Below the pieces are notes generated by a model that ran no database searches, was not told where the DNA came from, and worked only from the letters and a program-made list of their open reading frames with translations. A stretch of DNA of 64,000 bases, taken from NCBI GenBank assembly GCA_015680685.1, contig MNCI01001499.1, positions 183,349-247,348 on the forward strand. Direction: 5' to 3'. This DNA is from Gnetum montanum (Eukaryota; Plantae; Gnetophyta). Shown piece after piece: positions 16,520-49,547 of the stretch (its first letter is position 1; the number at the start of each line of letters is the position of its first letter). Made by a program: the position numbers and the translations under genes.

Positions 16520-17778
16520 TGACTATGTTGCAATAGGCAATGCACTAATGGATGGACTATGCAAGTAGTAGTCCACTAGTGGTTGCTACTATGTTGGGTA
16601 GGGCAATAGACAACAATAATCTAGGTCAAGCTCTCTAAATCAGGTGCAGTGATATTGAAATAGGAAGCAACAATGTTTTTTCCTAAGTTTTTCTAAATTT
16701 ATACCAATCCAAACCTAGCGTCCAAGTTGAAACCCTAGCTTTTTTTTTGAACTACACTTAGTTTCACAAAAGTGGAAACTAGGACTACACTGGAGTTGTT
16801 ATAAGATTTTAAAAAAAATTGTTATTTTTGGTTGGGCCCCATTAGAATTTCCCAAGAATGGCACAAAAAGCCATGACTACACTAGGAGTAGTGGTTTCCT
16901 ATCTAGACTATGTTGAGGTTAACACTCCAAAAATACATAAAAAACTTCCACTTTCATTCCACATTCATCCTATCTCTCCAAAACCTAGATTGGATGCTCT
17001 ACAACCTAGAATATGGTTAAGTATGAGAGCCCTTGTGACTATTCTAATAGCATACCAAGGAGTATGCTAGGGCAGCATAGTCTCAACTACTGCTAGTGTA
17101 GTGCATGATGGGATGGAGTTCCAAAAGATCATCCAACCTCTAAAAGCCTCCAAACTTACCATCCAACCTTACCAAACCCTAGCTAGAACCCCCAACTACA
17201 CTAAAACTTGATCAAAAGCACTTAAACTATGACAAGAATCAAGCTTCTTAATTCACTACACTAAGAGAAGTTGAGGACTATGCTAAACCACTATAGTCCT
17301 AGCTACTGCCTAGTGTAGTCCAACATAAAATATTAGATCCTACAACCCCAAGCAACTCACCTAGTTCATTCAACCCTTAGTTAACCCTGTATTAACACAT
17401 TGTTTCCTTAAACCCTAGCCAAAACCCTTAATAGCACTAAAACTTAATTAAAAGTACTTAAATTGTGATAAGAATCAAGCATCTACATTGACTATGATGA
17501 GAGACGTGGCAAACTATGTTGGACTAGCATACTCCTAGCTATTGCCCAGTGTAGTCCAACATGACATCTTGGGTCCTATAACCCCAAGCAACTCACCCAG
17601 TTCATACAACCCTTAGTTGACCCCAAATTAACACAAAATTTCCCCAAATCCTTACTAGAACCCCTAATAACACTAAAACATGATTAAAAGTACTTAAATT
17701 ATGACAAGAATCAAGCTTCTTCATTCACTACACTAAGAGAAGTGAAGGACTACATTGGGCCAATGTAGTCCTAGCTAC
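16520..17778. repeat. Element A internal tandem array, left part (about 235-240 bp units with palindromic GGACTA(C/T)(G/A)CT..AG(C/T)(G/A)TAGTCC core)
   Basis: Cores at about 17276, 17512 and 17746; the array continues after the B insertion. Confidence 0.85.
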
Positions 17779-19128
17779 TGTACCGTCCGAAATCATCAGT
17801 CTCCAGCTAGAAGGAAACAAAAACTGGGGGATCACAGGACACACACAAAAGACCCTACCTTTGCCTGAGGGCGAGCTAGAATGAACGAAGGTAGAGTACC
17901 TTGAGTGGTCTGCACACGGATTAGGCAAGGATTTCCCCAAACATACACCGAGGTGCTATACGCTGGGTTATACGTGAACGACGTAACAGGCGTAAAACAG
18001 GGCGTAAACAATGTAATTGATGTGAACAGAGCATAAACATAAAAGAGCATAAACAGAATACATGAAACAATTAATGAAAAATGTAACAGATTTTAGGAAG
18101 AANAGAGCATAAACATAAAAGAGCGTAAACAAAATACATGAAACAATTAATGAAAAATGTAACAGATTTTAGGAAGAAAATGTAACAATGGCATTTCAAA
18201 ATGAGAGTTACAATGCACCGGTCTAACGCAGTTGTGGCTTTGACACAAGGCGGACGAAAAGCCCCGATGGATGCAGGGATGATTATGGGCTAGTTCACAT
18301 TGTAGGCACAATGTAGAGGCTATATGCTCAGTGTACAGGGTTGTCCAATGTACAAGGTTCTCTGCTCTGGTTCTCAGCGTCTCTTTTCTCTAGTTTTCTC
18401 CAAAATTTGCCAACCAACCTCGTTCTGGTGAAAAATTGGGACTTTTATACAGGTTTCGATGTTAGACTAGGGTTGGATGACACGTGGCGTGCTGACCGAG
18501 TGCAAAAGAATGAAATTTACAAGTGTAGAGTATATTACATTTGCTGAGCGTATACGCTATATCGAGCGGGCGTAGACTTTGGGTGTATATGTTGGATGTG
18601 TTGGGCGTATACATTGGATGTGCATGGGCGTATACGCTGTGGATATTGAGCGTATACGCTGGAGTGTTTACACCGAAGGTTGCTGGGCATATATGCTAGG
18701 GCGTATACGCTGATGGTTGCTACCTTGTACCAAGTCTTGTTCTGTAGTGTTATTTTCATGCCGTCTTCAGGGATTGCATGCCGAGCATATGCATCAGTCG
18801 TACAAGCTAAACGTATTTGTGAGGTGTGTACGCTGGTCGTGTACGCTATGAACATCAGGCGTATATGCTGGGTGTATACACTGTGAACTTGAGCGTATAC
18901 GCTGGGCGTATATGCTGTGAATGTAAACTTTGAGCGTATACGCTTAGAATGTAGACTTGGGCGTATACGTTGGGCGTATACGCTAAGAATGCATACTTAG
19001 TGAAAATTAAGCATTTGATCTTCTGAAGTTGCCATGTTTGATACCAGATGTAGTCATGATCATCTGTGAGTCCCAGGGACATCCTTCTTGTTGGAAGAGT
19101 ATTAAGCTCAAAATTTTATGGTATTTCA
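17779..19128 (-). repeat. Element B 3' LTR
   Basis: Collinear copy of 34493-35805 with TG..CA ends, adjacent to the PPT. Contains an N-associated duplication at 18103. Confidence 0.95.
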
Positions 19129-19141
19129 TTGGCCCCTCTTT
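19129..19141 (-). other. Element B polypurine tract
   Basis: AAAGAGGGGCCAA on minus, directly before the 3' LTR; identical to the element C PPT. Confidence 0.9.
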
Positions 19142-20146
19142 GTTGACGCTTGGAGGAATCAACCCGAGAAGCGTCGACAAAGAAGTGGAAAACACCACAA
19201 GCAACTCGATAAAGGCATTGTCCTTTGCCACCTAACTAGACATCATCGCACCGTGTTCCATAGTACATAGGATTGGGAAAGTGAAATCTGTAGCTAGTAG
19301 GAAAATAAGGATTGTGGGGATCGGTAACTGACCAAGGGATTGTGCTTGGTAAAGGGGATGCTATGGTGTGTATCATGCTGATCCTTGTCAATAGCCATTA
19401 TTTAGTAGACTCGGAATCAAGACATGAGGTGTGCGTCCTTCGGCGGAACAAGACTCTTGGTTAGTGTTCAAGAGGACTTGTTGGCAAAACCAAAGCTACG
19501 TGATGATGTGTTGCATTATTTGGAGGAACAAGGCCCTTGTTTTAGGGGGAAGCCTGTTGGCGGAGAGCCAAAGCCATGCAACGGGATGTCGCTCGATTAT
19601 TTTTGACATGAGTATTTTTTTTCAAGACAACTGTCGTCTCGTCTTGTGTTTTTTGTGGGAAGAGACATTGTTTTTTTTTTGTCAGGAAGAAGCTTTGTTT
19701 TGATCTTGTACTCACGCTCAAGTGCAAAGGGTATGCTCAAAGTTTTGAGTGTACTGGGTGTATCAGAGGTGTGGCTGAGTACAGTATGTTGATGAATAGG
19801 TAGGAAATGTAGCGGGAAATGGAGATGTACTAGCGAACAGCTTGATTTTATCTTGCCACGTGTGCTGTGAACATTGCCTCATCTTGTTGCTTATGATGAA
19901 GTGCATTCTTGTACGAACACCTCTGAGTGTCATCCTACAAACACAACTCCAAGAAGACAAGAAAACCACTAGTGAGCGTGCGAGCTTAGACTTAAATAGC
20001 AACTGATGAAACATGGTATCGGATGAGAGTTCAGGCACTATATATGAATGCAAGCAATGTTGGTAAGATCGACAGATGGCGAGCGGTATAGCGATTCTGA
20101 TGAAGCTTGAATGTGGCCGTGGATTGAGGAACCAAAAATAAACTTG

Positions 20147-20513
20147 CCAATTTATAGTCTTAGTGGACTATCATGGGTTAGTTTTATGTCATAACCCATT
20201 GGACATTGCCCGTTTAGCGTCGTGGCAGACGGTACATTGCCAGTTTCTAGTCTTAGCAGACCGTCAAGAGGCAAACCAGTTTATAGTCTTAGCGGACTCT
20301 GGTGGATGCAACGGTCGCAGTTTGCTGTCATGTCGGATGGGTGCTATTTTATCATCATTACGGACCTTGTGTGGTATCAGTTTATCGTCATGATGCCAGG
20401 ACGAGCTGTGGTGTCAGTTTATAGTCGTGATCCAGGACTGTTCTATGGTATCAGTTTACCATCATGATTCCAGGATGAGCTGTGGTATCAGTTTATAGTC
20501 ATGACCCCAGGAC
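20147..20513. repeat. Element B 3' UTR short tandem repeats (CAGTTTATAGTCTTAGCGGAC / CAGTTTATAGTCATGA type)
   Basis: About 8 copies just downstream of the pol stop. A homologous array occurs in C at 57427-57730. Confidence 0.8.
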
Positions 20514-20535
20514 TCATACGTACCTGATCTTGTAT

Positions 20536-23500
20536 TCAAGTATAGAACGATTTCAGGAATAAGTGATTGGTTGGATTTGCAAACTCATTTCCTTCCATAT
20601 CAGCTAACTTGAATGCTCCATTGTCGTATGCTTTGGTGACCAAGTAGGACCCTTCCCAATTGGCTGAGAATTTGTTCGAGTGTTCCCGAATGGACTTAAG
20701 CACAAGGTCACCTTCCTTGATGGGGTGCTTATGAATGTCATGCCAATGGCGCTACCGTTGTTCTTTTTGGTACCACTCAATCTGATCGAGTGCACATATG
20801 CGTTCCTCCTCTACTGAGTCCAGGTCAATGATGCGCAGGTCATTATTTTGTTTTTCAATGAGGAGTCCAGAAAGTGTGATCCTTAAAGATGGTGCTTGCA
20901 ATTCTAGAGGTAAGATAGCTTCTGAACCATAAACAAGGCTATATGGTATTTTACCTGTTGAAGTTCAATGTGCAGTATGATATGACCACAATGTGTAAAC
21001 CAACTATTCATGCCATCTTCTCTTTCTTTGGGTAAGCATCTTTTTAAGTATGGTGATGATGGTTTTGTTTTTTGCCTCTGCTTGCCCATTGCTCTGAGGG
21101 TAGTAAGGGGATAAAAATGAGTTTTTGATCCCCAGACTTTCGCAGAAGGTCTTGGTTTCGGCATTGCTGAATTGTGGCCAGTTGTCAGTGATGATTGTCA
21201 TGGAAACACCAAAACGGGTTACAATATTTTCGAGAATGAAGTTGCATACATGTTTAGATGTGGTTTTTCAAAGGGGAACAGCTTCTACCCACTTCGTGAA
21301 GTATTCTGTTGCGGTTATGATGAAACTATGTCCTACAGAAGATGAGGGTGTTATTGGTCTGATAAGGTCCAACCCCCATTTTTGAAAGGGCCACGTGATT
21401 TGCGTTGTATACAACTCATTTGGTGGGACATGGATTAGATTACCGTGTCTTTGACAGGTACTGCATGTTTCTTCTTTAGAGAGACAATCATACTCCATGT
21501 GTGGCCAATAATAGCTTNTCTTTAGAGAGACAATCATACTCCATGTGTGGCCAATAATAGCTTAGACGTCTAATCTTTGTTGCCATTGCTTTTGGTGCTA
21601 TATGTCCTCCACATAGTCCATCGTGTACTTGCTCAACGATGGTTTGGGCTTCGGTGCTACTAACGCATGTTAGCAATATGCCTTTGTAGGATCGATGACA
21701 CAACGTGTCCCCTACCAGTACATATTGCCTAGAACATTTTCGTACCACATCTTTTTGTGCATTCGTTAAGTGTTGTGGTGTTTCACCACATAGAAGGTAT
21801 TCTTTTATGTCATCATACCACTCTATCGTGTGTGTTGTACTAATGGATGCAATTGGCAACGTATCAAGGGTGTCGGTTATTGGTTCGGCATAACTGGTTA
21901 TGGAGCTTGGCAACGTATGGAACATGTTAGGCGATATGTTCAATGCTAAGGTGGCCAATGCGTCCACGATGGTATTATCATTTCTAGATACGTGTTGCAC
22001 ATCAATGTTTTCGAATCGCTTCATTAAGTGTTTTGCCAAGTCACAGTATGGTTGTAAGTGTTGCGCTTTGCATGTATAAATATCTATGACTTGGTTCAAA
22101 ACTAGTTGTGAATCTCCTCTGACCACAAGACATGTGATGTCTGAAGTTAGTGCTGCTGTGAGACCTCTAAGGAGACCTTCGTACTCTGCTATATTGTTGG
22201 TACAATGAAAGTTGAAACAATAAGCAAAGGGTCTAATCTCCCTCGAGGGATAGGTGATGACAGTGGGAGCACTTTCCCCTCAAGAGGTGGAAGCTCCATC
22301 AAAGTTTAGAATGGCGTCGTAGTCATCGGGCACTATGTCTATTGCGCTTATATTCTCATCCGGGAATTCTGGCTCTATTTTTGCTTCATCGTGTGTTGGT
22401 GACGTGACCATTTGATTTGCTATGGCTTGAACCTTAACTAATGATTGCGCTATGTAATGTAGGTCAAACTCAGCTATCATGGCTTTCCAACGTGCTATCT
22501 GACTTGTCTTGTAAATGTTTCTTGTGATGGCTCTGAGCACATTATCTTTGCATATTATGTTAACTTGATTGTGGAAGAGGTAATGTCACCATTTCTTTAG
22601 AGAAAAGACTAAGGCTAAACATGACATCTCTACGTCATTGTATTTCTTCTCATGGCCTACTAATGCATGGCTCAAGTAGTAGACAGGGACTTCGGATCCA
22701 TTATCTTATTTCTGGCAAAGCATGGACGCAATTAATGAATCCGAAGTTGCAAGGTAGATGTAAAATGGTTTATCATTTTGAGGTGGATAAATTGTGGGCA
22801 GTTGGGTAAGTGCCGCTTTAATATTATCAAACGCTTTCTAGCACTATGGAGTCCATTCAAAATGAACATTCTTGCACAACAAGTAATTCATAGGTTTTAA
22901 TTTATCTGTTATTTTTTTGTATGAACCTTCTGATGAACTGTAGTCTACCCTGTAGACCTCGAAGTTCAGTAAGGTTGCTAGGTGGTTTTAGGTTCGTTAT
23001 GACCTTAACCTTATTGGGGTCCACTCGTATCCCTGCTTCTGAGGCTATGAACCCAAGCATTTTGCCTATTTTGACTCCAAAGACACATTTCTTTGGATTA
23101 AGTCACAACTCATATTTTAAACAACGTTTTAACACCAAGTCAAGGTCATGTACGTGTTGTTCCGAGGTCTTTGATTTAACCATAATGTCATCCATGTAGT
23201 CATTGAGCGAGTGTAACATGTAATCGCTAAAGATGAATGTCATCGCCTTTTGATATGTGGCCCCAGCGTTTTTGAGACCGAAGGACATCATTGTATAACA
23301 AAAGGTTCCCCATGGTGTCATAATGGTAGTCCGGAGTTGATGCTCCGGGTTAATACGTATCTGGTTGTATCCCGAGAAGCCATCCATAAAAGATAATAGG
23401 ACGTGCCCAGTGGTCGAGTTGACAAGTTGATCGATGCTGGGTAGGGGAAAATCATCTTTTATTGTTGCGATGTTGAGATCCCAGAAGTCAATGCATAAGC

Positions 23501-24059
23501 GAATGCTTCCATTCTTCTTCGGGATAATGACCATGTTGGATACCCATTCAGCGTAATTGATAGCTCGAATGAAACCAGCCTGATAAAGTTTGGTGATCTC
23601 ATTGCGAACTGTCAATGCCACCTCGGGTTTAACCTTTCACGTCTTTTGTTTTATGGGTCTCAATTTTGGATCAAGGATGATGTTGTGCTGGATGATTCAG
23701 GGATCTAACCCAGGCATGTTGGTGTAAGACCAAGCGAATGCTTTCATGTTGTTTCGAAGCACATATTCTATGTCTTTGGCCAGAGGAGGTTGCAATAGTG
23801 TATTTAATTTTAGTATCTTCGTCTCACTGTCAGACATAATGATGGGGGTTTCGATCAATGGGTCTTCAGTGATATTTTTAGCTTCTATGTCAAGGGACTT
23901 TGTCATACCTTGGTAGTTATCTAGCGTTTGTTGTGTTGGGGCTATGACTACGTCGTCTGTTGATAAACTTAAGTCGATAAGATTTATGTCAATGTCCCTT
24001 GTGATTTTTCCATGTGGCCCATCGATGATTAATGGTGCAGATAAATGTTGATAATCCAT
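20536..24059 (-). pseudogene. pol: Element B pol: RT, RNase H, archaeal-type RNase H, integrase
   Basis: RT: FMDGFSGYNQI, FGLKNAGATYQ, YMDDI. aRH: LNFDGAS..NNIAEYEG..GDSQLV. INT: H-x-GGH..C..C zinc finger, KWGLD, EYFTKWVEA, QSNGQAE. Stop TGA at 20538-20536, with several internal stops. Confidence 0.95.
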
Positions 24060-24180
24060 CGGGCTCACTCCTGCCAATGAACAGAGAGCATAATGAGGCG
24101 ATAAGTATTGCTCGATGTTTTCAAGCAACTTAAATTATGTGCACGTCCATAATGGTGGTTTATCGTCACACTGGGACGCA

Positions 24181-24247
24181 TGGCAGCTTAAGGCCATACC
24201 GGGCCGTGGGGATTTGTATGTGGCAGTTTAAGGCCATACCGGGCCGT
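24181..24247. repeat. Two copies of TGGCAG(C/T)TTAAGGCCATACCGGGCCGT at the pol-side border of the cassette
   Basis: Units at 24181 and 24221; same core as 29445-29531. Confidence 0.85.
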
Positions 24248-24474
24248 ATGTTTATTGAAAAATTTGCATAGGAGTGGTTCTACACCATAATGTTCGACGT
24301 GGACTTCTAGAGTTGGTTTACAAGGGATTCAAGATGTGGTAATATTTATTTTGTTTTAAATATATTTATTTTTTTGCCTTTTTAGAGGAAATTTCGATTA
24401 AAATAAGTAAAGAAGAGCAAAAAGGTACAAACCAGAAGGCGGCGGGGGTGGCAGCGACGACAGCGTCAGAGCGC

Positions 24475-24482
24475 TATAAAAA
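24475..24482 (+). promoter_or_regulatory. Putative TATA box of the element B antisense gene
   Basis: CTATAAAAAG about 290 bp upstream of ATG 24767, followed by AAACCCTA telobox-like sites and AGCGTA motifs. Confidence 0.6.
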
Positions 24483-24766
24483 GGGGGGGGTCATTTGTCA
24501 CATTGTTAAATTTTCAGCTAGCGTAAGTATCGAGCGTAAATCTTGAGCGTAGACGACCCAGCGTAAGCATAAACCACTAAACCCTAGCGTAAGCATAAAA
24601 CCTCAAACCCTGAGTGTAAACATAGAGCATAGAGGTCAAAGCATCAGCGTAGACGCCCCAACTCAGTGTTAGTGTAGACTCCAACTCGGCGTAGAGGCTC
24701 AGCGTAGGCATAAACGGCTTCAACGCTCAACGTAAACCTATTAATCACAGCGTAGAGGACGTCGAG

Positions 24767-27700
24767 ATGGGCAAAGGCAAGGATGTGGAAGGCCAGGGAA
24801 GGAAGGGACCTGAACTAACGTTCGCGGAGGAGAGCGAGGCCATGTTGCAGTGTCTGCCTAGGCAAGGGTTCCATCATGGCCTGGATCGTCACATAGGTAG
24901 GCTTTGATCCTGTCTCTGTTAGTTATTTCCATCTATACCAGTTTTTTAGCGTAGACAGTCAACGTAGAGGGTTTTGGTGTATACACCTGGCATAGATAGG
25001 TAGCGTACACAATTTTCTTGGCGTATATGCTCAGCGTAGGCAGTCAGGGTAGACGGTTTCTAGAGCGTAGAGACTACACATAGCCTAAGTTGTTTGTAGC
25101 GTAATCAGTTTCTGTGAATGCACAGCATAAACAAATTTTACTGGCATGAAGTGTAGACGATTTTATCAGCATATACACTGACTGTTCATAGGTCGTTTAT
25201 AGTGTCTGACGTAGACTGTTCACCAGCGTATACACTGAGGGCTATTACATTGTATACGCTGAGGGCTATTACGACGTATACACTGAGGGTTTTTACGACG
25301 TATACGCTGAGGGTTTCTATGGCATATATGCTAGGCATGAACGGTTTGTAATTTTTTCTAAGTGTATGGCGTAGACCTGTTTTCAGGGTGAGGACTGTTT
25401 TCATAGCGTAAACCAGTTTTACAGCGTATACGCCCAGGGTAAACAGTTTTGACAGTGTATACGCCCAGCATATACGCCGAGTGTAAACAGTTAGCAATTT
25501 TTTCTAAGTGTCGGCTTATAATGTGAAATTTTGTTCTTCATCGCATTTTCCTGCATGGCTGATTTACCATGGCATTTTGGTTGCTTGTAGGGACACTGAA
25601 CCTTTTCTCCTAGTTGTTGAGCTCGTTGGCGTATTAACGTGGTTTGGCCCCATTGAAGCCGATGAACCTACCTCGAACTTGACCATTGACAACAATGGGG
25701 TCTGGTTCAGAGAAGGTGCGTGTGAATTCCTATCCTTCATGCTGGACAGGTTCAAAGTGGTTATCTGGTCACACCTAAGTGAACTGGTGGCATGAAGCAT
25801 GCTTGAGGCCATGCTACTGGGAGCCGCGGAGGGTGTCACAGTCTTCATGGAAGACATTGATGAGGGGTCTCTTGTGATCAAGGGTGGCCCCTCTGGTGGG
25901 CCAAAATCCACTCGCCCGTTAACGCGCATGTGGGCCAAATTGCTGTAAGGGCGCGATTATCTAAAAAACACTCTATTTTTAGCTGTGCACACGCACACAT
26001 TGTTCCAGAACCCTCTTTGTACCGTGTACCGGGTGGATAGGTAGGATCGTTTAAGCTTGTTGTTTCTTTCTGTCGTTTGGCATTTGCTTTTGTTTTAACA
26101 TCCATTCGTTTGTAGGCCTAAAGTTAACCTAGATGGGACATCAATTGAGGATGATGGGCTTACTCTGGCTCGTACTGCTCTAGAGGCTTTTATGGCAGGT
26201 CCCACCCTTCATGGAGCTATATTAGCTCAAACCAAGGGTGATATTGTGCATTTTCAAAAAAGATTCTCTAGAGCGTTCACTCAATGCGCAGCTCGTGGAT
26301 GGTTGCATGGAGATTGGTCACCTAAGGGACCAATTTTTCCTCACGACTCTGACTTGGATAGTACCTCTAAGTCCACAACTGAAGGTAAATGACAATGTTT
26401 TCTAGATGTGTTAACGTGTTTGTTCAACTGCCGGGGGTTATACTGATATGACGATTTCAAATTGTATCTATAGTTGATGTTCCTCCTAGCGGAGACCTTG
26501 TTGCAACCAGATGAACTGAGACTACCCTATCAATGAAGTTCAGGGAGGTCAACAAGGCTCAAAAATGGTTGCGCACTCGTGCCCCGTCATCCATCGTTCG
26601 TTGTTTAGACGATGCTGGCCTTATGGAGTTCTTTACGACCCCGAGCCCTGATGTGTCAATAGTAGAAATGATCGGGATCATAGATTCCTTCAATGAGTCT
26701 GTCTCTTACTACAGCACCCGGATTAAGGGTGTTAAGATAGTTTTCCATCTATCGCCTGAATTTTTTTCAAACTTTTTTGGTGTACCGGCGGATGGTATAA
26801 ATGTAGTTTTAGACAGGGCTCATAAAGAGCTCCATACAGTTCATGAATTAGAGGACTGGTTGGGTGTTGCCAAGGGTGCCAAGGGATTCCCTATGTAGGG
26901 GAAGGTAAAGGTTAAGGAGGTGAATGAATTATATCCCCTGTTTAGGGCACATGCATTTCCTAAATCCCTTTCCCAGGTGTGAAGTCTTGGGGTTGAAGCT
27001 GTACGTATTATGCGCACCGTCCTAGAAACTGGCATGTGTTATAACTGGGCCCAATTTTTGTTGTCAGGCCTGCACAAAGAGATAGTGCGATTGCGCTCAA
27101 ATGTCGAGGCGTAGTCTCACTTTACTTTCTCATTATTTTCCGGTTATCTTCACCGCTTAGCTAAGTTCCTGGTGGTTCATGTGGATAACAAGTATGTTCT
27201 ACGGGATCGAGGTCAATTATCCCGCCCATGGATCAACCACCTATTTGAAATAGCGAAGTCCCAAGATGCGCCCGAGGGAATTGATGAATCTTTCTCCATC
27301 ACGACAGGGGGATCATCTGGTACCTCAATCCACACACGTGACAGTGTGGGATTGGAACTAGACGATGTGCCTTATACTGCGAAGAGAGTAGAACAGGTCA
27401 TCAAAGAAACTATTGGCAAGGCCAAGTCGAAGCTGACAAAACATGAACATCCAACCGAGGAGGCCTCAAATGTGGACAAGCCACAGGTTAAGTGCATACG
27501 ATTCAAGATGCCTGCCCGAGGTAAGTAAACTCAGTACCCTTATTGCTTTATCTTTTTCGTCTTACTCATGATTTTTACTTCGACCACTTACATGTTACTG
27601 ATGCCTTCAGACTTGATTCGAGAAGTGAGGAGGCAGGAATTAGAGACGATCATTGAAGAGGAGGAAACCAGAACAGAGTTATTGATCGATAAGGAAGAGG

Positions 27701-29214
27701 CTGACAAGGATTAGATGGAAAAAATAGAGGAGCTATGGGAAGACACCACGGAGACTAAGCTAGTGGATGACCAGAGTGGTATCGATGAAATGTTCAGGAG
27801 CTTCCTCAAGGGAAAGTTGGACCTTGGCGATCCTCCAAACCCAAAAGGGGACAGGGAACATGGTATATTTTCTTTTATTTTGTTTTATTTTGCTTTGTTA
27901 GCTATTATTTCCATGGTATTTTACTTTTGTGTTTTCATCTCTTCCAGACGAAGGCAGCGAAACTAGGACGATGCGGCTGGATGTACCCATGAAGATGATT
28001 CCCCCTGAAACGACCGCGGAGGTTAGTCCGTCTCATACTCGTGGGTCATTTACTTGGACAGAGATGCTAAGTAAAATGGATTTTGTGGCTAGTATCACTG
28101 AGGAAGTTGTCAAATGAATTTAGGAGGTCCACCCTAAGATAGGTATATATATTTCGAGTTTTTTGCAACTTTAGAGTTTCACCCCCTATTTTTGTCACTT
28201 TAGCATTTTTTTTCTTTTCATGTGAATAGGTGCCAAACTAAGGTGGGATCCTTTTGAGACAATTAACATAGAGAGTTTGCCTACATTATCCCCAGAGGTC
28301 GAGCAGGTGCCTAGGCCAGTTTATGAGGAAGTGGTGGAGGGTCTCGTTCACAACGCCAAATTGCTGTGGACCTGTAGGTGTTCCGTCGAACAGTTATGGT
28401 TGCAGATTCAAACAAAGGAGAAAGAAGTTTCTGAGTTATCAGTTGAGCGTGACAATTTAAAGGCTCGGTATGAGTTTGCCTCCGCTAAACTAAGCGATGA
28501 TCGCTCTTGACGGACCTCTGAGGTCACGTATACCAGGTATTGGAATTTGCTCAATCGTCACGCATCACTAATGCAGAGACTAGCAGAGCGTAAGACTCAT
28601 ATAGACCTACTAAACCTCAAGTGTCAAGATTGGAAAGCTTTCACTTCCAAGGTACGCAAATGGGGTCAGGATGAAAAGAACCACAAACATCATTATAAGA
28701 AATCATTGAAAGAAGTGTCCATTGAAAAGCGTCAACTGGAAATGTTTGTGGAGGGTCTGGGTCTGCGCTCTGCTTTTGATACCTTTGCTCAAAACACAAC
28801 TGTTGAGATGGAATTGCCTGCAAGGGTGATTACAACTGCTTCTAGGGAGGTGTCTATGGGTGAGTTCCCTTTAAAACGTCCTACCTGGTTAGCCATTAAC
28901 AAAGGGAAGGCCTTGGTAGATGTTGACCTAGGCCTCGATGGGACCGACTGGACCAGTGTCTCAGAAGAGGAAATCCTTCGCCGGCTGGAATTCGACTTGG
29001 GGGGATCTCCTGTGGTAAGCATTTTGTTATTATGATCTTTGTTCGTTGCCCATTTTTTGGAATTTCTTCTTTCTCTTATTCTTATGTTGACTATCTCTTT
29101 TTGCATTTTTAGGATCAAGGTAGTGACGATGTCTACGAAGCTGGTCCTAGTGAAGCGGGGGCCCATGATGCTAGCAGGTCTAAAGAGGATGACCCTCCCA
29201 CCCCAGATGTTTAG
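24767..29214 (+). pseudogene. Element B antisense 8-exon gene (about 1,076 aa): FCP1/NIF HAD-like pseudo-phosphatase, Transposase_32-like domain and coiled coil
   Basis: Exons 24767-24896, 25591-26040, 26116-26384, 26474-27520, 27611-27862, 27948-28142, 28230-29014 and 29113-29214. All introns are GT..AG with T-rich 3' ends. Exon lengths keep one frame after restoring a 1-nt deletion in exon 1 (inferred from copy C). About 10 premature stops. Confidence 0.9.
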
Positions 29215-29444
29215 TTTTGTTTGTTTTTTCATTTTTTGACTCGAATTTATACGGGAATTGTAAATTGAAATGAATGAAACCAGTTAACCTTTGTACTTAT
29301 ACATCATTTCATATATAAAAAATGTTGTTGATTTTGAGTTTAATTACAAACACGACACAGCAATGTAAAATGTTTTGGTTGGTTTTTGTGGTTTAAGTGT
29401 AATGCGCGGGTGTAATTATAAGTCAGAAAGCATAAGTGGATGTT

Positions 29445-29531
29445 CTAGTTTAAGGCCAGTTCGGGCCAGATTCACACTAGTTTAAGGCCATTTCGGGCCA
29501 GATTCGCACTAGTTTAAGGCTATTTCGGGCC
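29445..29531. repeat. Three 32-bp units CTAGTTTAAGGCCATTTCGGGCCAGATTCNCA at the gag-side border of the cassette
   Basis: Units start at 29445, 29477 and 29509. Confidence 0.85.
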
Positions 29532-29661
29532 CCAGCGTAAGCAAGGAATGTTTCGAATGACATGGGTGGGTTTCTCGATTGACCGACCATTTCTGATTGT
29601 GGCTAGTTTTATGTCGTTGCAGTCATGGTAGTTTAATGTCATTTCGGACATTTTTCATTAT

Positions 29662-32600
29662 TCATTGGTTTAGTAATTTTTTGATTTTTCGAATTTTTAC
29701 GTTGGGAGCAGAGTTAGAGGGTATGATTCTATATTCAGTGTCTCCTTTGTTGATCACGTTGAATGGTAATTCAGCCCAAGGAACGTTTGATGGAATAGTC
29801 CCCGCATCGATGTTTTCAAGTGTTTCGACATTTGGTGTGAGTTCTATGTTAGTTGTTGTTTCTAAGTGAGGAGGTGTATGTACAATGTCTGGCCTGGGTA
29901 TTTCTATTTTGGGTGGATCTTCTTCTGTGTTTAAAGGATTATCGCTTGTCGGTGATTGTTCATTTATGTCATGTTGTTTAGGCTCTTCGAGCTTAACCTC
30001 TAAGCCTTGGTCTGTGTCTATGTATGATGAGATGATGTGTGTAGCAGCCTCCTCGTGTATGATGATTTCACCACCTTCATATGGCAGGTGAATCTCTTAG
30101 TGTATAGGGGATGAGACTGCTTTTAGTTGGGCTAACCAAGGCCTTCCTAATATTAGGTTGAATCCTGGCATCTCATTGATTACTAAGAATTCGGCAGATG
30201 TGGGGAATTGGTCCCCTGCTATGAAGTCCAAGGTCACGATGCCTTTGACTGCCATGTGCGATCTGCTAAATGATTTTAAGCATGTGGTGGCGGTTGGTCT
30301 GATTAGCTCTGTGAGCCCCAGTTGTTCGATGATGGGATATGGGACTACGTTTATGGTAGCTCCATCATCTACGTGGACCCTATGTATCTGGAATTAGTTT
30401 ACTCTTATTGTTATAAAGAAGGGGTTGTTGTTATCTCCCCTGTTTTCTTATCCACCTTGATGTTATCGTTATGGAAACTTAATGGTTTGGAAGTTGACCC
30501 TTGGGGCGAGTACATTACCGCATGAATCGAAGGTTCATTTGGAGGCAAGTCCTCGCTTACTGGGATCGACGTTAACATGCGTACTAAAGCTTCGTGATGT
30601 GTTTGGGATGTTAAAACTAGGTCATATAAGCTCAGTGAAGTATTCTTTTTCTTGAGCACTTGTGTGACCTGCGTTAGGGCTATTGCTAGGTCTTTACTGT
30701 TGGGCATGTGTTTATCGACAATGACTTGGTCCATTGGGCCCAACAGTTTTATTTCATGCATCGTTGGTTTATCATTTGTTCTTAGAATTGTTGATTCGGG
30801 CTTATCATGTTTTCTGGATGATTCCCCCTTGTGACCTATATTTGGTTGATCATTAGGTAGTGTCATGGGTATCTCATTTAATGGAGTGGGTTTAGGAGGT
30901 CCTAAGGCTAGCCGTTGACGCTCCTTTTCCAAGCGTTTGTGCGTAAGCCTATCTGCTAAGCGTTCTTGTGTGTGATGTGGGGGCGCAGTTGGTTTTGAGG
31001 CCTCAGTTTACCTTGGGATTCGTACTACGTATGGAGTCAGATGGGATTGCGGTTGGACAGTTGCCTACAGTGGGGTGCCAGATGGGCTATGCACCTTGAT
31101 GACATAGGGGTTTGGTTTATTTTTTGTTTGGGAATTAGAGGATTGGGGATCACTAGGACGTTCGGGTGTCCTAACGATGTATAGGGTTGGTTTAAGTGGA
31201 GGTTGGACCTTCGCTGTTGCAATTGCGGGTGGCACTCGGACTACATAAGGGGCAGGCCGAGTAGGAGGGGTTGGTAGATTTGAGGTAGTGATGGCGGGAG
31301 GTATACACACCACGTATGGTTTTTCACGTGTCGAGGTGTTAGAAGCCATTATGGCGAGGGGTAGGCGGACAACATATGGCTACTGCGGGGCGTATGATGA
31401 TTGAGGCATGGATGTTGATGCAGTGGGAGGAATACGTACTACAAATGGCTCGTTGGATGTTTGTTGTTCATTGTCAAAGTAGATGGTGTTAATGCTAGGT
31501 GTTTCAGGTTCATTGTCTAGGTAGATTATGTTAGTAACGTACGATGCCTCTTTGGTATTTAGTGGATCTTTACACACACCCATAGCCTGGTTCTGCGGTT
31601 GGACCGGGTTGGCCTCATCAAAAGTGATTTGGCCTCCATCGATCATTCATTGTATGTCTTGTTTTAGGGTGAAATAGTAATCCGTGCCATGCTTGTTACG
31701 TTGGTGATAGTCGTAGAAATGATCCATCCTAAAACCTTTGGGTACTGGGGGTTCATCCGACATTGCTAAGCTCGGGTTCTGAACCAGTTGACAGAACCGG
31801 TCGTGTCTTTGGATCGCTGCCGGGGACAACTGTTTATGTTTCATTAATCCAGCCCTCAAGAGTTAATCAAATAGCTGGGATGGCTTCATAGGAAATGATG
31901 TATATTGGGAGGGTTCTTTCCTCTCAAAGTTTCTCATATGGTTTGGTGTTGGGTTCTGCAATGAGGAAGATTCCGGTGCAGTCATGGGAGTAGGTTTAAT
32001 AGGGGCCATCGGTAGTTTGTTTTCTTGTGCCACATGTGCTTGTTGTGTTTCCGCTAATGCTGCTATAGTTGTTTTATACTTTTCTTTATCTTTCTTACTG
32101 TGTTGATTTTTGAAGGCTAAATACGTAGGATCATGGCTATTTTGGGCCACCTCCTCTATATTTTTAATCTGTACAAAGGCTTGATTAAGGTTACGCGTAT
32201 TGAGGTAATATAACTTAGATTTAAAAAAGTCGTTAACATCCCCCTTTAGAATGGTGATCAGATATGTCTGTGGGATTGGCTCATGGAGCTCATTAAGAGT
32301 AGTGCCCCACCTCTGGATGAATTTTTGTATGGGTTCTAAAGGTGCTTGTTTGACCTATATCAGGCTGTCAAGTGTCGCTTCAGGTTTCAAGTTATACTTG
32401 AACCTGGTAAGGAATTGATGTAACAACTCTTCCAAGGAAAATATCAAGTTTCTTGGCAAGGCCCGATACCAATCAAGTGCTCTCCCTGCAAGGGACATAG
32501 GGAACACTCGTAAAATGGTGTGTGGCCATGCCTGAAGTAATGCACACTCTAGCCTAAATGTTATAAGGTGAGCATTGGGGTCCATCTCCCTGTTATATTT

Positions 32601-33841
32601 AGTTAGCGTAGGCAATGATACGCCTTTGGGTAAGGTTAGGGGCGGAACGGAAGAGCTGATGGGGTCATCGTTGTAAAAGTCCACTACCTTCAACTCTCTG
32701 TCGGCAGCTGTTTTGAGGCGTTTGACCATATCAGTTGGTTTCTGCATTAGTTTTTTAGCATCTGCCCAGTCTTGAGCGCTAGGTGAGGTGGTAGCTTAGG
32801 GATGTGGTGCAATGTATAGATTAGATTGTTGAATAGTAGGTTGGAAGGCTGAAAGTTGTGTAGTTGGCAGTTGTACTTGTGGAATGTTTATAGTAGATGG
32901 CATCAAGGGCGACATATTGTGAGCAAGGGGTTGCTGTTGTTGTGGTTGTGTTTGGGGGATGTTGACCGGTGGCATTGTATGAGGTGGCATGTTGTAGTGA
33001 GGGGGTTGATGTGGTTGAGCACCCATCGCTATCCATTACCTAGTCATGTTTTTTGTAGGAATCCCTTGAACTTGTTGAGTTACAGTGGTAGAAGGGGCTC
33101 CGTGAGTTTGGACCTGGGGGATATAATGGGTAGACGTAGATGCCGGTATCACATGCGACATCCCAATCACACGAGGTGGGAAGGTTGCCCCTACATTATT
33201 TTGAGGGGGTTGCATTTGTAAGAACGAGGGTGCCATAGCTGCGGGAGGAATTACGAGGGGAAGCGTGTTGACTTGAACGTCGGTTGGTAGAGGAATAGGG
33301 ATGAGTGCGGCTACATCTTGTTGAGGCGCATGCGCTTGCGTGATGTTCAGTGGCTGGAGGGATGAAGTTTCACCCGTGAATGGGTGAAACAGTGGGTTTA
33401 TATAAGTTTGTGGGCTAAGGGTGTGGTACGAGTCTTCATGTTCAGATTGGGCAGCGAACTTGTCCTCCTCTTTCGATTGAGGGTTTACTACAGGCTGATG
33501 CTCCTTTACAGCAGGAGTTGTGTGATCAGCTTAGAGTAAGGCTCTAGAACAGGGATGATATCGTACAGGGAAGGAATGAACTCTTGCCCTCCCCTGTAGA
33601 AAATTTCGTATTGCCTTTTAACTTCTATTTCGGCTTGGTCCACAACTTAGCTGGCTTGTATTTTCAGGCATATGAAGTTGTACTGGTCTTGACTTATGAT
33701 GTTAGATGACGAATTGCTTCCTTGCAACCTAAGGGATCGACGGGGCCCCGCTGTGGGTTGTGCCATGGGCTGTTGGACAGCCATAGTGCCTACGATGTCG
33801 GTGACTTGGGTGGTTATAGCGGTGGTGTTTGCGGTGTTCAT
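29662..33841 (-). pseudogene. gag: Element B gag-protease
   Basis: Retrotrans_gag-like KYNREMDPNAHLITF..FPMSLAGRALDWYRAL, degenerate Zn knuckle near 31700, protease HRVHVDDGATINVVPY at about 30340-30385. Frame ends at TGA 29664-29662. Confidence 0.9.
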
Positions 33842-33899
33842 GATGAACAGTTGAGAATGTCACATAGTGTATGGATGTGAAATTGGTGTACTTAGTGCA

Positions 33900-34440
33900 G
33901 CGTAATCCTAGGTTCGTGGCGTACAACGTATACACTGGGTCTCAGCATATAGGCTTCAGTGTAGACAGCGTAGACAACGTATAGGTATACAGCGTATAGT
34001 GTTAGCGTAGAGAATCTACGGCGTAGAGTGTGCAGCGTATATGCTTAGCAGCGTATACAGCGTCGGCGTACAGCATAAACAAGGTTATAGCTTACAGAGT
34101 GTAGCATATAAGGACAACAACGTAAACTAGTTTAGGGCGTAGACAGGGTCTTGTATGCGGCGTAGACAAAGTCTTCAGCGTAAAGTGGGTAGTGCGTATC
34201 CGGTAGCGTAGATGCTGGGGATTCTGCAGATAGAGTCTGCGTATGTTTGACAGCGTAGACGCTGAGAGACTTGTAGATGGTAAGTTTTAAATGGAGTAAG
34301 TTTTAAATGGAGCAGCATAGACACTTGACAGCGTAGACGCTGGATAGTTTGTATACAGTAAGTTTTAAATCAAGCAGCGTAGACGCTGAGAGGTTTGCAG
34401 AGAGGGTCAGTGTATATTCGATAGTGTAGACGCTGGGAGT
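33900..34440. repeat. Element B 5' leader array of AGCGTA(G/T/A)AC motifs
   Basis: Dense CAGCGTAGAC / AGCGTATA copies between the PBS and gag. Confidence 0.8.
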
Positions 34441-34469
34441 TTTTGAAGCACAATAATTTTAAGGCATAG

Positions 34470-34487
34470 GCCCTCCTTCTAGCACCA
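34470..34487 (-). other. Element B primer binding site, complementary to the 3' end of plant tRNA-Asn(GUU)
   Basis: Minus-strand TGGTGCTAGAAGGAGGGC, 5 nt after the 5' LTR. tRNA-Asn ends CCCTCCTTCTAGCGCCA, so one CpG transition. Confidence 0.85.
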
Positions 34488-34492
34488 ATTTC

Positions 34493-35805
34493 TGTACCGT
34501 CCAAAATCGTCGGTCTCCGGCTAGAAGGAAACAGAAACTGGGGGATCACAGGACACACATAGAAGACCCTACCTTCACCTGAGGGCGAGCTAGAATGAAC
34601 GAAGGTAGAGTACCTTGAGTGGTCTACACGCAGATCAAGCAAAGATTTCCCCAAACGTACACCGAGGTGCTATACACTGGGTTATATGTGAATGGCGTAA
34701 CAGGCGTAAAATAGGGCATAAACAATGTAATTGATGCAAACGGAGCATAAACGTAAAAGAGCATAAATAGAATACATGTAACAATTAATGCAAACTGTAA
34801 CAGATTTTAGGAAGAAAATGTAACAATGGAATTTCAAAATGAGAGTTACAATGCATTGGTCTAATGCAATTGTGGCTTTGACACAAGCCGGACGAAAAGC
34901 CCCGGTGGATGCAAGGATGATTGTGGGCTGGTTCACACTGTAGGCACAGTGTAGAGGCTGTATGCTCAGCATACAGGGTTGTCCAGCATACAAGGTTCTC
35001 TACTCTAGTTCTCAACGTCTCTTTTCTCTGGTTTTCTCCAAAATTTCCCAACCGACCTCGTTCTGGTGAAAAATTGGGGCTTTTATACAAGTTTCGATGT
35101 TAGACTCAGGTTGGATGACATGTGGTGCATTGACCGGGTGCAAAAGAATGAAATTTACAAGTGTACAGTATATTACATTTGCTGAGCGTATACGCTGAGT
35201 GTATATGATGTATCAAGCGGGCGTAGACTCTGAGTGTATACGATGGATGTGCTGGGCATATACACTGGATGTGCATGGGCATATACGCTGGGTGTATACG
35301 CTATGGATGCTGAGCGTATACGCTGGAGTGTTTACGCTGAAGGTTGCTGGGCATATATGCCGAGGCGTATATGCTGATGGTTGCTGCCTTGTACCAAGTC
35401 TTGTTCTGCAGTGCTGTTTTCATGGCATCTTCGGGGATTGCATGTTGGGCATATGCATCAGTCGTATAAGCTAAACATACTTGTGAGGTGTGTACGCTGG
35501 TCGTGTACGCTATGAACATTGGGCGTATATGCTGGGTGTATACGCTGTGAACTTGAGCGTATACGCCAGGTGTATACGTTGTGAATGTGAACTTAGAGCA
35601 TATACGTTGGGCATATATGCTGAGAATGTAGACTTGGGCGTATACGTTGGGCGTATACGTTGAGAATGCATACTTAGTGAAAATTAAGCATCTAATCTTC
35701 CGAAGTTGCCATGTTTGATACTAGATGTAGTCATGGTCATCTGTGAGTCCCAGGGACCTGCTTCTTATTGGAAGAGTACTAAGCTCAAAATTTTTTGGTG
35801 TTTCA
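34493..35805 (-). repeat. Element B 5' LTR
   Basis: Copy of 17779-19128. TATA (TGTATAAAA on minus) at about 35081-35088; AGCGTATACGCT array at 35180-35665 in U3. Confidence 0.95.
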
Positions 35806-38800
35806 ACTACTACCTAGCATAGTCCAACAACACATCTTGGATTCTATAACCCCTAAGAAACTCACCTAGTCCATTCAATCCTCAGTTGAATCCAAATCAA
35901 CACACCATTTCCCAAAATCCTAGCTTGAGTCTCTACCAAGATTGAGACCTAGTCAATTATAGTATATGGTTCAACGTTTTCCTTTTTCCCCATGACTATG
36001 TTGGGAAAAACTAGCATCTAAATTGGGCTAGCATAGTCCTCAGATTCTAGGGATAGTAGACACCATACTAACCCTTACACACCTCCTAAACTACCTTTCA
36101 AAGCCTCCACACCTTGTCAGGACCCCTAACAATCCTAGATTGCTAGTTGATCGAACAAACAACCTTAGGAAAATCAATGAAATTGAGTTTCTACATGTGA
36201 CTACATTGAGGACTTGGACGACTATGCTAGGCCAGCATAGTCCTAGTGATTGCCCAATGTAGTCCACTCAAAACCAAAGAAATAATCATTTGTGAACTCC
36301 AACTCAATTTTCGAGATCCCTAAGACACCAAACTAGGTTAAATCTCATCATTTATACCATATTTCATACCACAACTAAGCCTACACTAAATGGGGAGCTA
36401 GGACTATGCTAGGCTAGCATAGCCCCTTCCTAGGGTCCAACATAATCTCATTAATATACCAAAAACCATGAAACTTGATTTCTGCAAAGCCCTGAAACCC
36501 CAGTTAAAGCTCATCTAACCCTAAAATCTAGTTTCCTTCACAGTTTGTCATCCATCACATGGACTACACTAATGAGGGGAAAAGGACTATGCTAGGCTAG
36601 TGTAGTCCATGCATGAGCCTAGCATTAACCATTTCAAGAATCCATAGAAACCATGGAAATTAACCTTTGGAAAACATTAGAACTTAATTCAAAACTATTT
36701 TTCAACAAGTTTTGTATATTTTTCACCATTTTAGCCACTACAAACTTGGACTATACTAGGGGAGATGGGAACTATGCTAGACTAGTGTAGTTCTAGTCTA
36801 GGATAGTGTAGGTTCTTTTAAAAATTGTAAAAATATCAAAAAAATATACTCAGATCAACACCTAAGAACCCTAGAGTGCTATTTGAAGTTGACTAATAAT
36901 AGAACCTATAATTTTTTCAATTTTTTTGACCTTCCAAAATGGGACTACATTGAAGGACATGAGGACTACGCTAGGCCAATGTAGTCCCTCTCCAAGTCCA
37001 ATGTAGTCTTCCAAAAACTAATGAAATTTGTCAAAAATAACTTAAACTACTACCAAAAAAACATTTTCCAAGCCCATTTAACTTCAAAACCTTCATTTCA
37101 CACCATTTTTGGTTACATCCACCATGACTACACTAGGGTAGAATGAGGACTACACTGGCCAGCATAGTCCTTCTCTAGGCCCAACATAGTCCATAAAAAA
37201 CTAATCAAATTTACTTAATAACCACCTAGATTTTATGTTCATAGACCCTAAAACCTTCTATAAGCCTTTCTGCCTCTAGAAATTAGCATTTTCCATCCCT
37301 TTTTCTCATTCCGACCATGCCTACACTAGATGAAGACTAGAACTATGTTGTGTTAGTGTAGTCCCGCTCTAGGCCCAACGTAGTCTCTCAAAATGGGAAG
37401 AAAACATGCTAGCAATCATCTATGTTTGTTTCCAATCAAATGCAACACCTTGTTGGAAGCCTCCATCAAGCATGGAAACAACTTTTGACAATCCAAACCT
37501 AGACTACACTAACAAGGAGATGGGACTACATTGGGCAGGCATAGTCCCATCCCAAACCTAGCATAGTCCCAACCAAAAATTCCATAGTAGGCTAAAAATG
37601 ACCCAAAAATATGTCTATCAACTATAGGACACTATTGGGACACATTAAGTCTAATAGACCCTAAATTCTAGTCAAAATTCATTGATTTTGAACCCTCACA
37701 CCTTGACTATGCTAAGGAGTGATAGGGACTATGTAGCACCATCATAGTCCCTCTTAATCACCAGTGTAGCCTCCATTAGAATGCCCAAAGTTGATCAAAC
37801 AATCATCAAATCCACTTCTATTCAAGCTTCACACATCACCAGAGACTATTTACTCATGGAACCCAACTTCTCTCATCATTTCTAACCCACAACACTTGAA
37901 TGCAATGAAGATGGGTAAGGACTATGTTGGGCCAACATAGTCCACTCCAAGCCTAGCATAGTCCCCATAAACTTATCCAAAATCATTCAAAATCTACTTT
38001 AAATAGTCCTGGGGCCCATCAAAGTTAATTTTGATTCTAAAATTTGTTTCATTTATTTCAAACTCACTATACTACTAGGCTAGCATAGTCCCTACCTAGC
38101 CCTAGCATATTCCACTTAAAACACTCCAAAAATAACCAAAAATACCTTAGAACTCATTTTTTGGATGTCTTGGAACACTGCCAAAGTTGATTTCAATTGT
38201 AAAACTTAGTTTCTGCAACTCTTGGAATGCAACTACATTGAAGAGGACTGGGACTACATTGGTCTAGCATAGTTACTATCCAAGCCCAGCATAGTTCATT
38301 TGAAGATGATCAAAATAGCTCTAGAACTACCAAATCAACTCCTAGAAAGACCTGGAGCCCTATCAGAACATCTACAAACCTTGGAATCTTGGAAAACAAG
38401 AAAAAATTCATTATTTTTTTAAGCTTTTCTCATTTGGAATCCTTAACTATGGTAGGAATTTCACACCCCATGTAGTCCCATGGTATTTTGGGATTCAAGG
38501 CCCAAATGAGCATGATAATTGGAAATTTCTACATCAAAACCCTAGCCAGTGATACTAGTGATCCCAAAAGCCCATTAGAATGGTTAATCGAATCCCAAAA
38601 TTGACTAAAATTCATATTCCACTTCTAAGTATGTTAAGGAAGTAAGGGACTATGTTGGGCTAATGTATTCCCGCTTGGGAGAAAAAATGTAGCAACCAAA
38701 ACTAACAGTAAGCAACTTAGAATGGTCCAAAATTGATCTAGAATGAGTAGAATCTTATCCCCATGATTCTCAATTGTATATTTCATCTTGTTTAGCCTTG

Positions 38801-39080
38801 GGAACCTCATAAATCATTCATCCCCTTGTGACTATGCTAGGGCCTAGTGTCCTAGCATAGTCATCATAAGAAACAAGTCTCTTCCACTTTTTAGAAGCCA
38901 AAATGGTATCAAAAGCTATCAAATTTCAATACCTACCTACTACACTAGCTATTTAGACCACTAGAAGCCTAAAAATGATCATACCCAGCCCTAGAAAGTG
39001 CCCTGTAGGTTAACTACACTAGAAGAGGATAGGACAATGTTGGGCTAGTGTAGTCACTAGTAGGGCCCAACATAGTCACA
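35806..39080. repeat. Element A internal tandem array, right part (about 185-bp units with palindromic core)
   Basis: Cores at about 36220, 36401, 36584, 36769, 36964, 37147, 37340, 37522, 37726, 37919, 38251, 38647 and 39030. Confidence 0.9.
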
Positions 39081-39529
39081 AAATGATCCCCTCATGGGCC
39101 AAAACTCTTATGACAAACCTATAGCCACATACCATGGCCCACTAAGGCCTAAAATTTGCAAAATCTAATCCTTCTTAACTAGTATTAGCCAAATTTTTCA
39201 TATGTATTCCATTTAGATAAATTTGACCTTGTGTTGCATTACTAACCGTCTTTCTTACCACTTGACTTTATATGACCTTCATATAACTTCCTATTTTACC
39301 ATTTTCACCTTATTTTCAGTCTTATGGCCTTTGATTGACCTTATATGGCCTTTTTTTAATCCCACTAGTCATTATCTATCTCTTATAGCCTTGGTTCACC
39401 TTGTTTTTATTTTTGTTTATCATTGAAATAGAATATGTTTGCATGTTTACTAAATCATTTTAGCATTTTTTATTCATTTTTAACTAGATGACACATAATA
39501 TGCTTATGGTTGCTATGCAAGATTGAACT

Positions 39530-48330: not shown

Positions 48331-48620
48331 GTCTTGATGAAAGATGAAAGTAAAGTATGTATAGTAGGGATTGGTGAGAGCATATGTGATTTTGGTTTGC
48401 ATGGGCATCCCCTAGTCTTCTTCATCACTAGTCCTGTCATTACCTCTATGTAATTCTTTGGCAAGTGGTGATTGGTCTTTAAGTGAAGCCATGTTGAAAT
48501 TATGATGCTTGTTAAGTGTGTGTGTGTGTTTTCAAGTTTACTTAAGAATTATAAGTTTTAACTTTTGAATTCCTAATACAATGAACTTTGTAAAATCAAT
48601 TACTTAGTACACAATGACTA

Positions 48621-48638
48621 TCACCAGCAACAACACTA
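48621..48638 (-). other. Element E primer binding site, degenerate tRNA-Asp type
   Basis: Plus-strand TCACCAGCAACAACACTA resembles a decayed TCCCCGGCAACGGCGCCA and lies next to the LTR. Confidence 0.65.
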
Positions 48639-48639
48639 A

Positions 48640-49522: not shown

Positions 49523-49547
49523 TGTTTTACTCTTGTTGTTGTTGTAG

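Follow-up and report, generated by a model that had tools for sequence, protein, structure and literature searches.

Evidence for an intron-bearing accessory gene located between protease and reverse transcriptase, in antisense orientation, in a Tat/Ogre-type retrotransposon lineage of Gnetum montanum

The 64,000-nucleotide stretch of Gnetum montanum DNA analyzed here (assembly GCA_015680685.1, contig MNCI01001499.1, positions 183,349 to 247,348), referred to as the window, includes a long terminal repeat (LTR) retrotransposon, named element B, in which a gene on the opposite strand to gag-pol occupies nucleotides 24767 to 29214, between gag-protease (PR) and pol. This region is probably (we would put the probability at about 0.8) a decayed copy of a real intron-bearing accessory gene that belongs to a Tat/Ogre-type Ty3/gypsy lineage. 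The gene has a defined exon-intron structure that is conserved in A, B, C, and D, four elements of the window that have diverged from one another; each copy has decayed in its own way, and the protein was under constraint while the lineage diverged.

Extra genes are common in plant LTR retrotransposons and their functions are unknown. Surveys have found them as single long open reading frames (ORFs) upstream or downstream of gag-pol (PMC6317226); since single long ORFs are what is sought, a gene split by introns and located inside the polyprotein region would be missed. The lineage described here would be a case of a retrotransposon stably carrying a multi-exon gene whose introns are protected by their antisense orientation, and the presence of a whole gene between gag-PR and pol raises the question of how pol is expressed.

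Structure of the antisense gene in element B

The gag-PR frame of element B terminates with a stop codon at 29664-29662 and pol starts near 24134/24059, leaving a gap of about 5.6 kb. These limits, obtained from Pfam matches and translation, confirm those given in the first-pass annotation of this DNA (end of gag-PR at 29662, pol from about 24059). The same annotation had described in the gap an opposite-strand gene with eight exons and seven GT-AG introns, preceded by a TATA box, and this model was reproduced exactly: homology, reading frames, and splice signals yielded eight plus-strand exons, and every one of the seven introns is GT-AG, with phases that agree across it. The TATA box, CTATAAAAAG, is found at 24475-24484 (plus strand), about 290 nt ahead of the ATG; in copy C the sequence TTATAAAAAA is found at 61179, about 340 nt upstream of the ATG of that copy. 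A TATTAAT located 24 nt ahead of the ATG was also considered as the TATA box of copy B and rejected in favor of CTATAAAAAG.

All exons are on the plus strand of the window. For their analysis they were handled one by one, with stops read as X or skipped and split codons left out. Exon 1 (24767-24896) begins with the ATG at 24767 and includes, near 24855, a 1-nt gap with respect to copy C. It is followed by intron 1 (24897-25590), which is 694 nt long and holds arrays of the motifs GCGTAKAC and GCGTATACGC. Exon 2 (25591-26040) codes for a domain of the HAD type that resembles those of UBLCP1 and FCP1 and lacks the catalytic aspartates. Exon 3 (26116-26384), conserved in A and C, is free of stops in B, and exon 4 (26474-27520), with 1,047 nt, codes for the most conserved domain and is colinear with nucleotides 14077-13090 of element A. 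An acidic linker is encoded by exon 5 (27611-27862), which is followed by exon 6 (27948-28142) and by the helix-rich, coiled-coil-like exon 7 (28230-29014), conserved in A and D. Exon 8 (29113-29214) codes for an acidic tail ending at a TAG at 29212, with an AATGAA at 29269.

The splice sites have a good consensus (donors AG/GTAGG, AG/GTAAAT, AG/GTAAGT, TG/GTATAT, and TG/GTAAGC; a T-rich tract and then YAG at the acceptors), and introns 2 to 7 are 75 to 98 nt long. On the plus strand, the exons have a G+C content of 47.6% and 25% T, and introns 2 to 7 have 31% G+C and 50% T. Plant introns are U-rich, and the strand-specific 50% T is as expected of them.

The exons add up to 3,230 nt, and counting the 1-nt gap of exon 1 brings the frame to 1,076 codons. 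The first-pass annotation had proposed one frame of about this size after a single 1-nt correction; the length holds but the open frame does not, as the exons include ten premature in-frame stops. These are TGA 25793 and TAA 25946 in exon 2, TGA 26512, TAG 26896, TGA 26980, and TAG 27112 in exon 4, TAG 27712 in exon 5, TGA 28115 and TAG 28121 in exon 6, and TGA 28508 in exon 7. If the deletion in exon 1 is placed according to the alignment with C, the TAG at 24859 lies in the downstream frame and becomes the eleventh. The antisense gene of element B is a pseudogene, decayed like the rest of the element.

Conservation in four related elements

The cassette is present between PR and reverse transcriptase (RT), antisense and in the same place, in all four related elements of the window. 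In element A, a plus-strand element interrupted by B, in which gag-PR occupies 8.0-11.0 kb and pol starts at about 39.5 kb, the homologous gene lies at 11278-16472 on the minus strand. Element C, on the minus strand (RT at 60230-59742), carries exons 1 to 3 at 61518-64000 (plus strand), where the gene is cut by the end of the window, and its exon 2 is open. Element D (gag-PR at 54337-51864, minus strand) carries exons 7 and 8 at 50064-51000 (plus strand), tail to tail with gag-PR.

Searches with the exons of B using tblastn matched C (E = 8e-43 and 8e-24), A (E = 1e-29 and 2e-18), and D (E = 9e-18), and the similarity at the nucleotide level (blastn) is almost gone. The signal comes from the strand of the proposed gene: plus-strand frames reached 268 bits against A and 102 bits against D, versus 69 bits and none, respectively, for the minus-strand frames. 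The colinear stretch of exon 4 measures 933 nt in B and 934 nt in A, and in exon 2 a 12-nt indel that keeps the frame distinguishes B from C. Identity between copies at the three codon positions follows the order 2 > 1 > 3. The proportion of synonymous differences (pS) is 0.71-0.78, i.e., saturated, and that of nonsynonymous differences (pN) is 0.33 for B-C and 0.44 for B-A and for B-D; these values, like the identities that follow, are rough and were taken from segments selected by tblastn. At the amino acid level pol is 64% identical between B and C and 52% between B and A, and gag-PR is 46% identical between B and A. The antisense protein shows about 48% (B-C) and about 31% (B-A), lower than gag and pol, which indicates that the gene evolves faster than both and is nevertheless constrained.

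In addition to the stops of B, 11 are found in A, 2 in C, and 9 in D, and none is common to any two of the four copies. Each copy therefore decayed independently after its insertion.

The intron boundaries are shared as well. Donors and acceptors 1 and 2 are at the same codon and in the same phase in C; A retains donors 2 and 4, acceptors 2, 3, and 6, and intron 7; and D has a conserved acceptor 7 and an acceptor 6 that has mutated to AA. Between copies, the sequences of the introns have diverged or cannot be aligned. On these comparisons, the introns are ancestral to the lineage. On the sense genomic RNA they read CT..AC and, since they would not be recognized there, they would remain unspliced and be reverse-transcribed with the element at each round of retrotransposition. 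Persistence of antisense introns through retrotransposition had already been proposed in the first-pass annotation, and it fits positions and phases that are shared where the sequences of the introns no longer align.

The predicted protein

The likeness of the exon-2 domain to the FCP1/SCP (NIF) group of HAD phosphatases is weak. A profile built with the pieces from B, C, and A found the phosphatase domain of UBLCP1 (3SHQ) with E = 1e-4, exon 2 of C alone had the same top match with E = 0.12, and Pfam NIF matched exon 2 of B with E = 0.011, short of the curated cut-off. The alignment covers residues 168-263 of UBLCP1 and includes the blocks FL..vviwS, kPL..vW, and NT... In place of the DxDxT nucleophile motif, B has ELVGV, C has ELIGV, and A has KMVGL; in place of the later acidic pair DD, they have AV, AF, and VG, respectively. 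As both are lost, the domain is not expected to be an active phosphatase and is predicted to be a pseudo-phosphatase.

At least 30 exon pieces from the four copies were compared with Pfam, and all matches were below the threshold; PMD (plant mobile domain, PF10536) did not match any exon-4 piece from B or A, and PF04195 (Transposase_28) did not match the exon pieces. In a language-model Atlas, two exon-4 pieces were associated with DUF1985 (0.90, 14 of 30 matches), PMD (0.85 and 0.78), Transposase_32, and ATHILA, which we take as leads only. The C-terminal part had a weak Pfam match to PspA (E = 0.04-0.06), and an AlphaFold model of an exon-7 piece has two long helices, but its pLDDT is 39.8; that of exon 2, made from a 7-row alignment, has the same value. 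Profile searches of the PDB with exon 3 and with the N-terminal piece of exon 4 returned nothing meaningful, and homologue searches with exon 2 of C and with exon 4 of B, subject to a limit on length, found none. Two matches of the most conserved exon-4 piece in a phmmer search of 1.84 billion representative proteins, a Calx-beta-like bacterial repeat and a low-complexity repeat, were rejected as spurious, as was a metagenome locus (L001), a bacterial contig matched through one seeded octapeptide. A PMD-like middle domain followed by a helical C-terminal part would fit the pattern known for the extra ORFs of Tat elements, and a dead phosphatase domain may be combined in the accessory protein with a domain of the plant-transposon type, a combination reminiscent of the host PMD-PP7L silencing module (Nicolau et al. 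2020, cited in PMC9289625).

RNA reads over the cassette

Four RNA runs labeled as the same species were mapped on the 5,900 letters from 23950 to 29849 at 85% likeness. The depth was 0-5x, and most reads were less than 90% alike and so came from relatives. At the positions of three of the stops, these transcribed relatives have sense codons: TGG at TGA 28508 and, near a loose read end at 28095, CGT at TGA 28115 and CAG at TAG 28121. The differences between B and the reads are mostly A>G and T>C, the bias expected if B decayed by C-to-T deamination. At this low depth the four runs gave no read joint spanning the PR-RT interval, from about 29.66 to about 24.07 kb. In one of them, X1, about 85% of the depth over the exons was in one orientation, to which no strand is assigned, with the PR and pol ends balanced.

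In the same run, a 60-nt stretch within exon 7 (28497-28557) was covered by about 100 reads, which have only four to five start positions and flanks that do not match. These reads are probably duplicates from a diverged copy.

Repeated motifs and the start of pol

Two motifs are repeated in and around the cassette. The palindrome GCGTATACGC (GCGTAKA) forms arrays at 18822-18998, 35237-35675, and 24540-25470. The first two lie in the 3' LTR (17778-19128, minus strand) and in the 5' LTR (34492-35805, minus strand) of B. Together, the two LTRs and the 5' untranslated region and intron 1 of the antisense gene account for 55 of the 62 occurrences of GCGTATACGC in the window, a distribution that suggests that the LTRs and the antisense gene of B may share regulation.

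The second motif, TTAAGGCC-N5-GGGCC, occurs 12 times in the window (0.8 expected) and flanks the cassette of B on both sides, with two copies on the pol side (24188-24245, plus strand) and three tandem copies on the PR side (29450-29531, plus strand). In D the motif is again on the PR side, and in A it is just ahead of pol; the positions noted outside the cassette flanks of B are 39136, 43007, 43155 (minus strand), 51387, and 51496. RNA reads with 0-1 differences pile up at 29442-29615, where joints add or remove units of 32 nt.

A YAG followed 8-11 nt later by ATGG is common to the start of pol in A (39520-39535), B (24072-24059), and C (60905-60890). It could be a splice acceptor and a start codon for pol; no donor of matching phase was found at the end of gag-PR.

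Interpretation and alternative explanations

The presence of the cassette in all four elements, the shared introns, the stops private to single copies, and the protein similarity that persists despite a saturated pS support the proposal of the first-pass annotation, in which the lineage carries a stable accessory gene under selection rather than the remains of an accidental capture. Active copies would transcribe the gene from its own TATA promoter within the element, and the transcript, once spliced at the seven U-rich GT-AG introns, would be translated into a protein of about 1,076 residues. The predicted product would combine a UBLCP1/FCP1-like pseudo-phosphatase HAD domain with a central domain that may be of the PMD/DUF1985 type, and would also have acidic linkers and a C-terminal part that is helical.

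Several points weigh against this interpretation. The four copies of the window are all broken, and none was seen intact. RNA junctions had been suggested in the first-pass annotation as a check of the introns, and none of the seven introns had a joint with at least three reads in the four runs, which at 0-5x says nothing against splicing. The strand of the RNA over the cassette is not established. Neither AlphaFold model is usable. No homologue was found among the 1.84 billion representative proteins, in Pfam, or in a collection of 5.8 billion clusters, the host being absent from the protein collections, and in consequence family and function rest on weak similarities. Finally, the segments used for pN and pS were selected in a way that favors amino acid matches.

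By analogy with what has been proposed for the PMD-coiled-coil ORFs of other Tat elements, the protein might be a nuclear regulator or adaptor that aids transcription of the element or counters silencing by the host, a role that we offer tentatively and regard as possible rather than likely. A more elaborate scheme, which we consider unlikely, would have the PR-RT interval be an expanded sense intron of the Ogre type, bounded by the conserved TTAAGGCC-N5-GGGCC repeats and hosting the antisense gene with its seven introns; the product, with its pseudo-phosphatase, PMD-like, and coiled-coil parts, would act on the GCGTATACGC arrays of the family in the LTRs and in the 5' region of the gene, promoting transcription or blocking silencing, and would be the retrotransposon equivalent of family-specific anti-silencing factors. 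If young intact copies exist, they would be a tractable system to learn what the accessory genes of Tat elements do.

A fragment of a host gene, introns included, could have been captured once by an ancestral element and copied along since then without function. The exon-2 domain, which looks derived from a host phosphatase gene of the UBLCP1/FCP1 type minus the catalytic residues, is what such a capture would leave, and it would account for the fact that every copy seen is broken and that neither expression nor splicing was shown in RNA at 0-5x. Nevertheless, a neutral passenger would decay in the active lineage too, and here the similarity of the proteins has outlasted synonymous saturation, splice sites and phases have been kept, indels are in frame, stops are private to single copies, and the gene has been retained across lineages whose pol is only 52-64% identical. 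For these reasons we find this explanation quite unlikely.

The antisense RNA itself could also be the functional product, either in a regulatory role or by supplying double-stranded RNA directed at the genomic RNA of the element, with coding being secondary. The element does contain a promoter for the antisense strand, reads of relatives cover the region in both orientations in the unstranded libraries, and such a function has been raised for antisense extra ORFs in reviews (PMC7264820). An RNA product, however, would preserve neither a reading frame, nor the codon-position bias, nor in-frame indels, nor exon phases, and would not make the plus-strand frames outscore the minus-strand frames, which leaves this explanation very improbable. 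Lastly, the 10 to 11 in-frame stops of B and the lack of a Pfam domain above threshold are what a non-coding spacer with ORF pieces and GT-AG pairs arising by chance would look like, but homology with three other copies (E-values down to 8e-43), conserved phase-compatible boundaries, and the sharp contrast in composition between exons and introns refute such an artefact, to which we give practically no credence.

Comparison with known elements

The accessory gene interpreted as above has partial counterparts. Ogre elements are large Ty3/gypsy elements with gag fused to PR in one ORF, pol (RT, RNase H [RH], archaeal RNase H [aRH], and integrase [INT]) in a separate downstream ORF, and an extra gene. 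The gap between gag-PR and pol of Ogre averages 274 bp and is a non-coding sense intron (PMC6317226, PMC4408406), whereas the gap of about 5.6 kb described here holds a whole antisense gene. Furthermore, the extra ORF of Ogre, coding for PMD and a coiled coil, is upstream of gag, in the sense orientation, and intronless.

The extra ORFs of Tat elements are found at the 5' end (sense) or at the 3' end (antisense) and encode PMD and a coiled coil (Ustyantsev et al., PMC4408406). Tat lineages III and V, Retand, Grande, and RIRE2 resemble the present lineage in having an accessory gene opposite to gag-pol that is kept across the lineage; its own promoter has been shown for the antisense ORF of Grande, the products have PMD, Transposase_28, or coiled-coil/SMC-like parts, and tandem repeats are found nearby (PMC4408406, PMC7264820, PMC11963269). 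Those genes are described as single ORFs between pol and the 3' LTR; in the present lineage the gene is instead in the PR-RT interval, has seven introns and a phosphatase-like start, and, unlike the antisense ORF of the Retand type, shows no Transposase_28 match. Introns in antisense Tat ORFs are not reported in these papers or in PMC6317226.

A more distant parallel is HBZ of human T-cell leukemia virus type 1, which is likewise an antisense accessory gene of a reverse-transcribing element (cited in PMC11963269 and PMC7264820). HBZ differs in that the 3' LTR drives its transcription; its sequence is unrelated, and it does not lie inside pol. Its major mRNA is spliced and has few exons.

The literature context given in the first-pass annotation, with the PR-RT intron of Ogre and antisense Tat ORFs downstream of pol, is correct (PMC6317226, PMC4408406, PMC7264820, PMC11963269). 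It had also known of no description of this architecture, and we found none of an antisense intron-bearing gene between PR and RT in the full-text literature searched, which does not include subscription papers such as Steinbauerova et al. 2011. What is new here can be considered the position of a Tat accessory gene, its introns, and the addition of a dead-phosphatase domain.

Element B and its surroundings

Element B (17778-35805, minus strand) is a complete Tat/Ogre-type Ty3/gypsy element nested inside element A. Its LTRs are 87-91% identical, its flanks, GCTAC and ACTAC, look like a decayed 5-bp target duplication, and a 236-nt satellite of element A resumes on each side. The gag-PR region (29662-32747, minus strand) includes a Pfam Retrotrans_gag match at 32747-32355 and PR (VDDGAT...ILGRPWL) at 30393-30100. 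The pol region (19763-24134, minus strand), cut into many pieces by stops and frameshifts, was recognized through Pfam matches to RVT_1, RVT_3, and Integrase_H2C2 and through pieces aligned to C and A. The domains are in the order RT, RH, aRH (RVT_3), INT, with RT at 23621-23103 and aRH and the integrase zinc domain at 22126-21488; RVT_3 (E = 6.5e-10) is immediately ahead of Integrase_H2C2, and in the pol of element A RT_RNaseH is followed by RVT_3. An aRH between RH and INT and a PR fused to gag is the layout described for Ogre and Retand, Tat elements of flowering plants (PMC4408406, PMC6317226). Element B has the aRH in pol, LTRs, target duplication, gag, PR, RT, and INT expected of the Tat clade (OTA superclade), and the separate gag-PR and pol ORFs of Ogre (Tat lineage IV). 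A search with RT had best matches of only 50-57% identity in the protein collection (Taxus, Prunus, Aristolochia, and others), so that the host species and close relatives are not represented there.

There is little space between the 5' LTR and gag. A putative primer binding site adjoins the 5' LTR at 34470-34491 on the minus strand and reads TGGTGCTAGAAGGAGGG (start given as TGGTGCTAGAAGG...). Ogre elements use tRNA-Arg as primer.

Within 45000-56000, gag-PR and exons 7 and 8 are all that was detected of element D; exons 1 to 6 and pol were not found to the left, and D is therefore truncated or interrupted. A 191-nt tandem repeat is located in the same interval, at 55525-55906. The 236-nt tandem repeat of element A (17172-17780 and 35806-39080) lies between the antisense gene and the pol of A, and it was into this array that B inserted.

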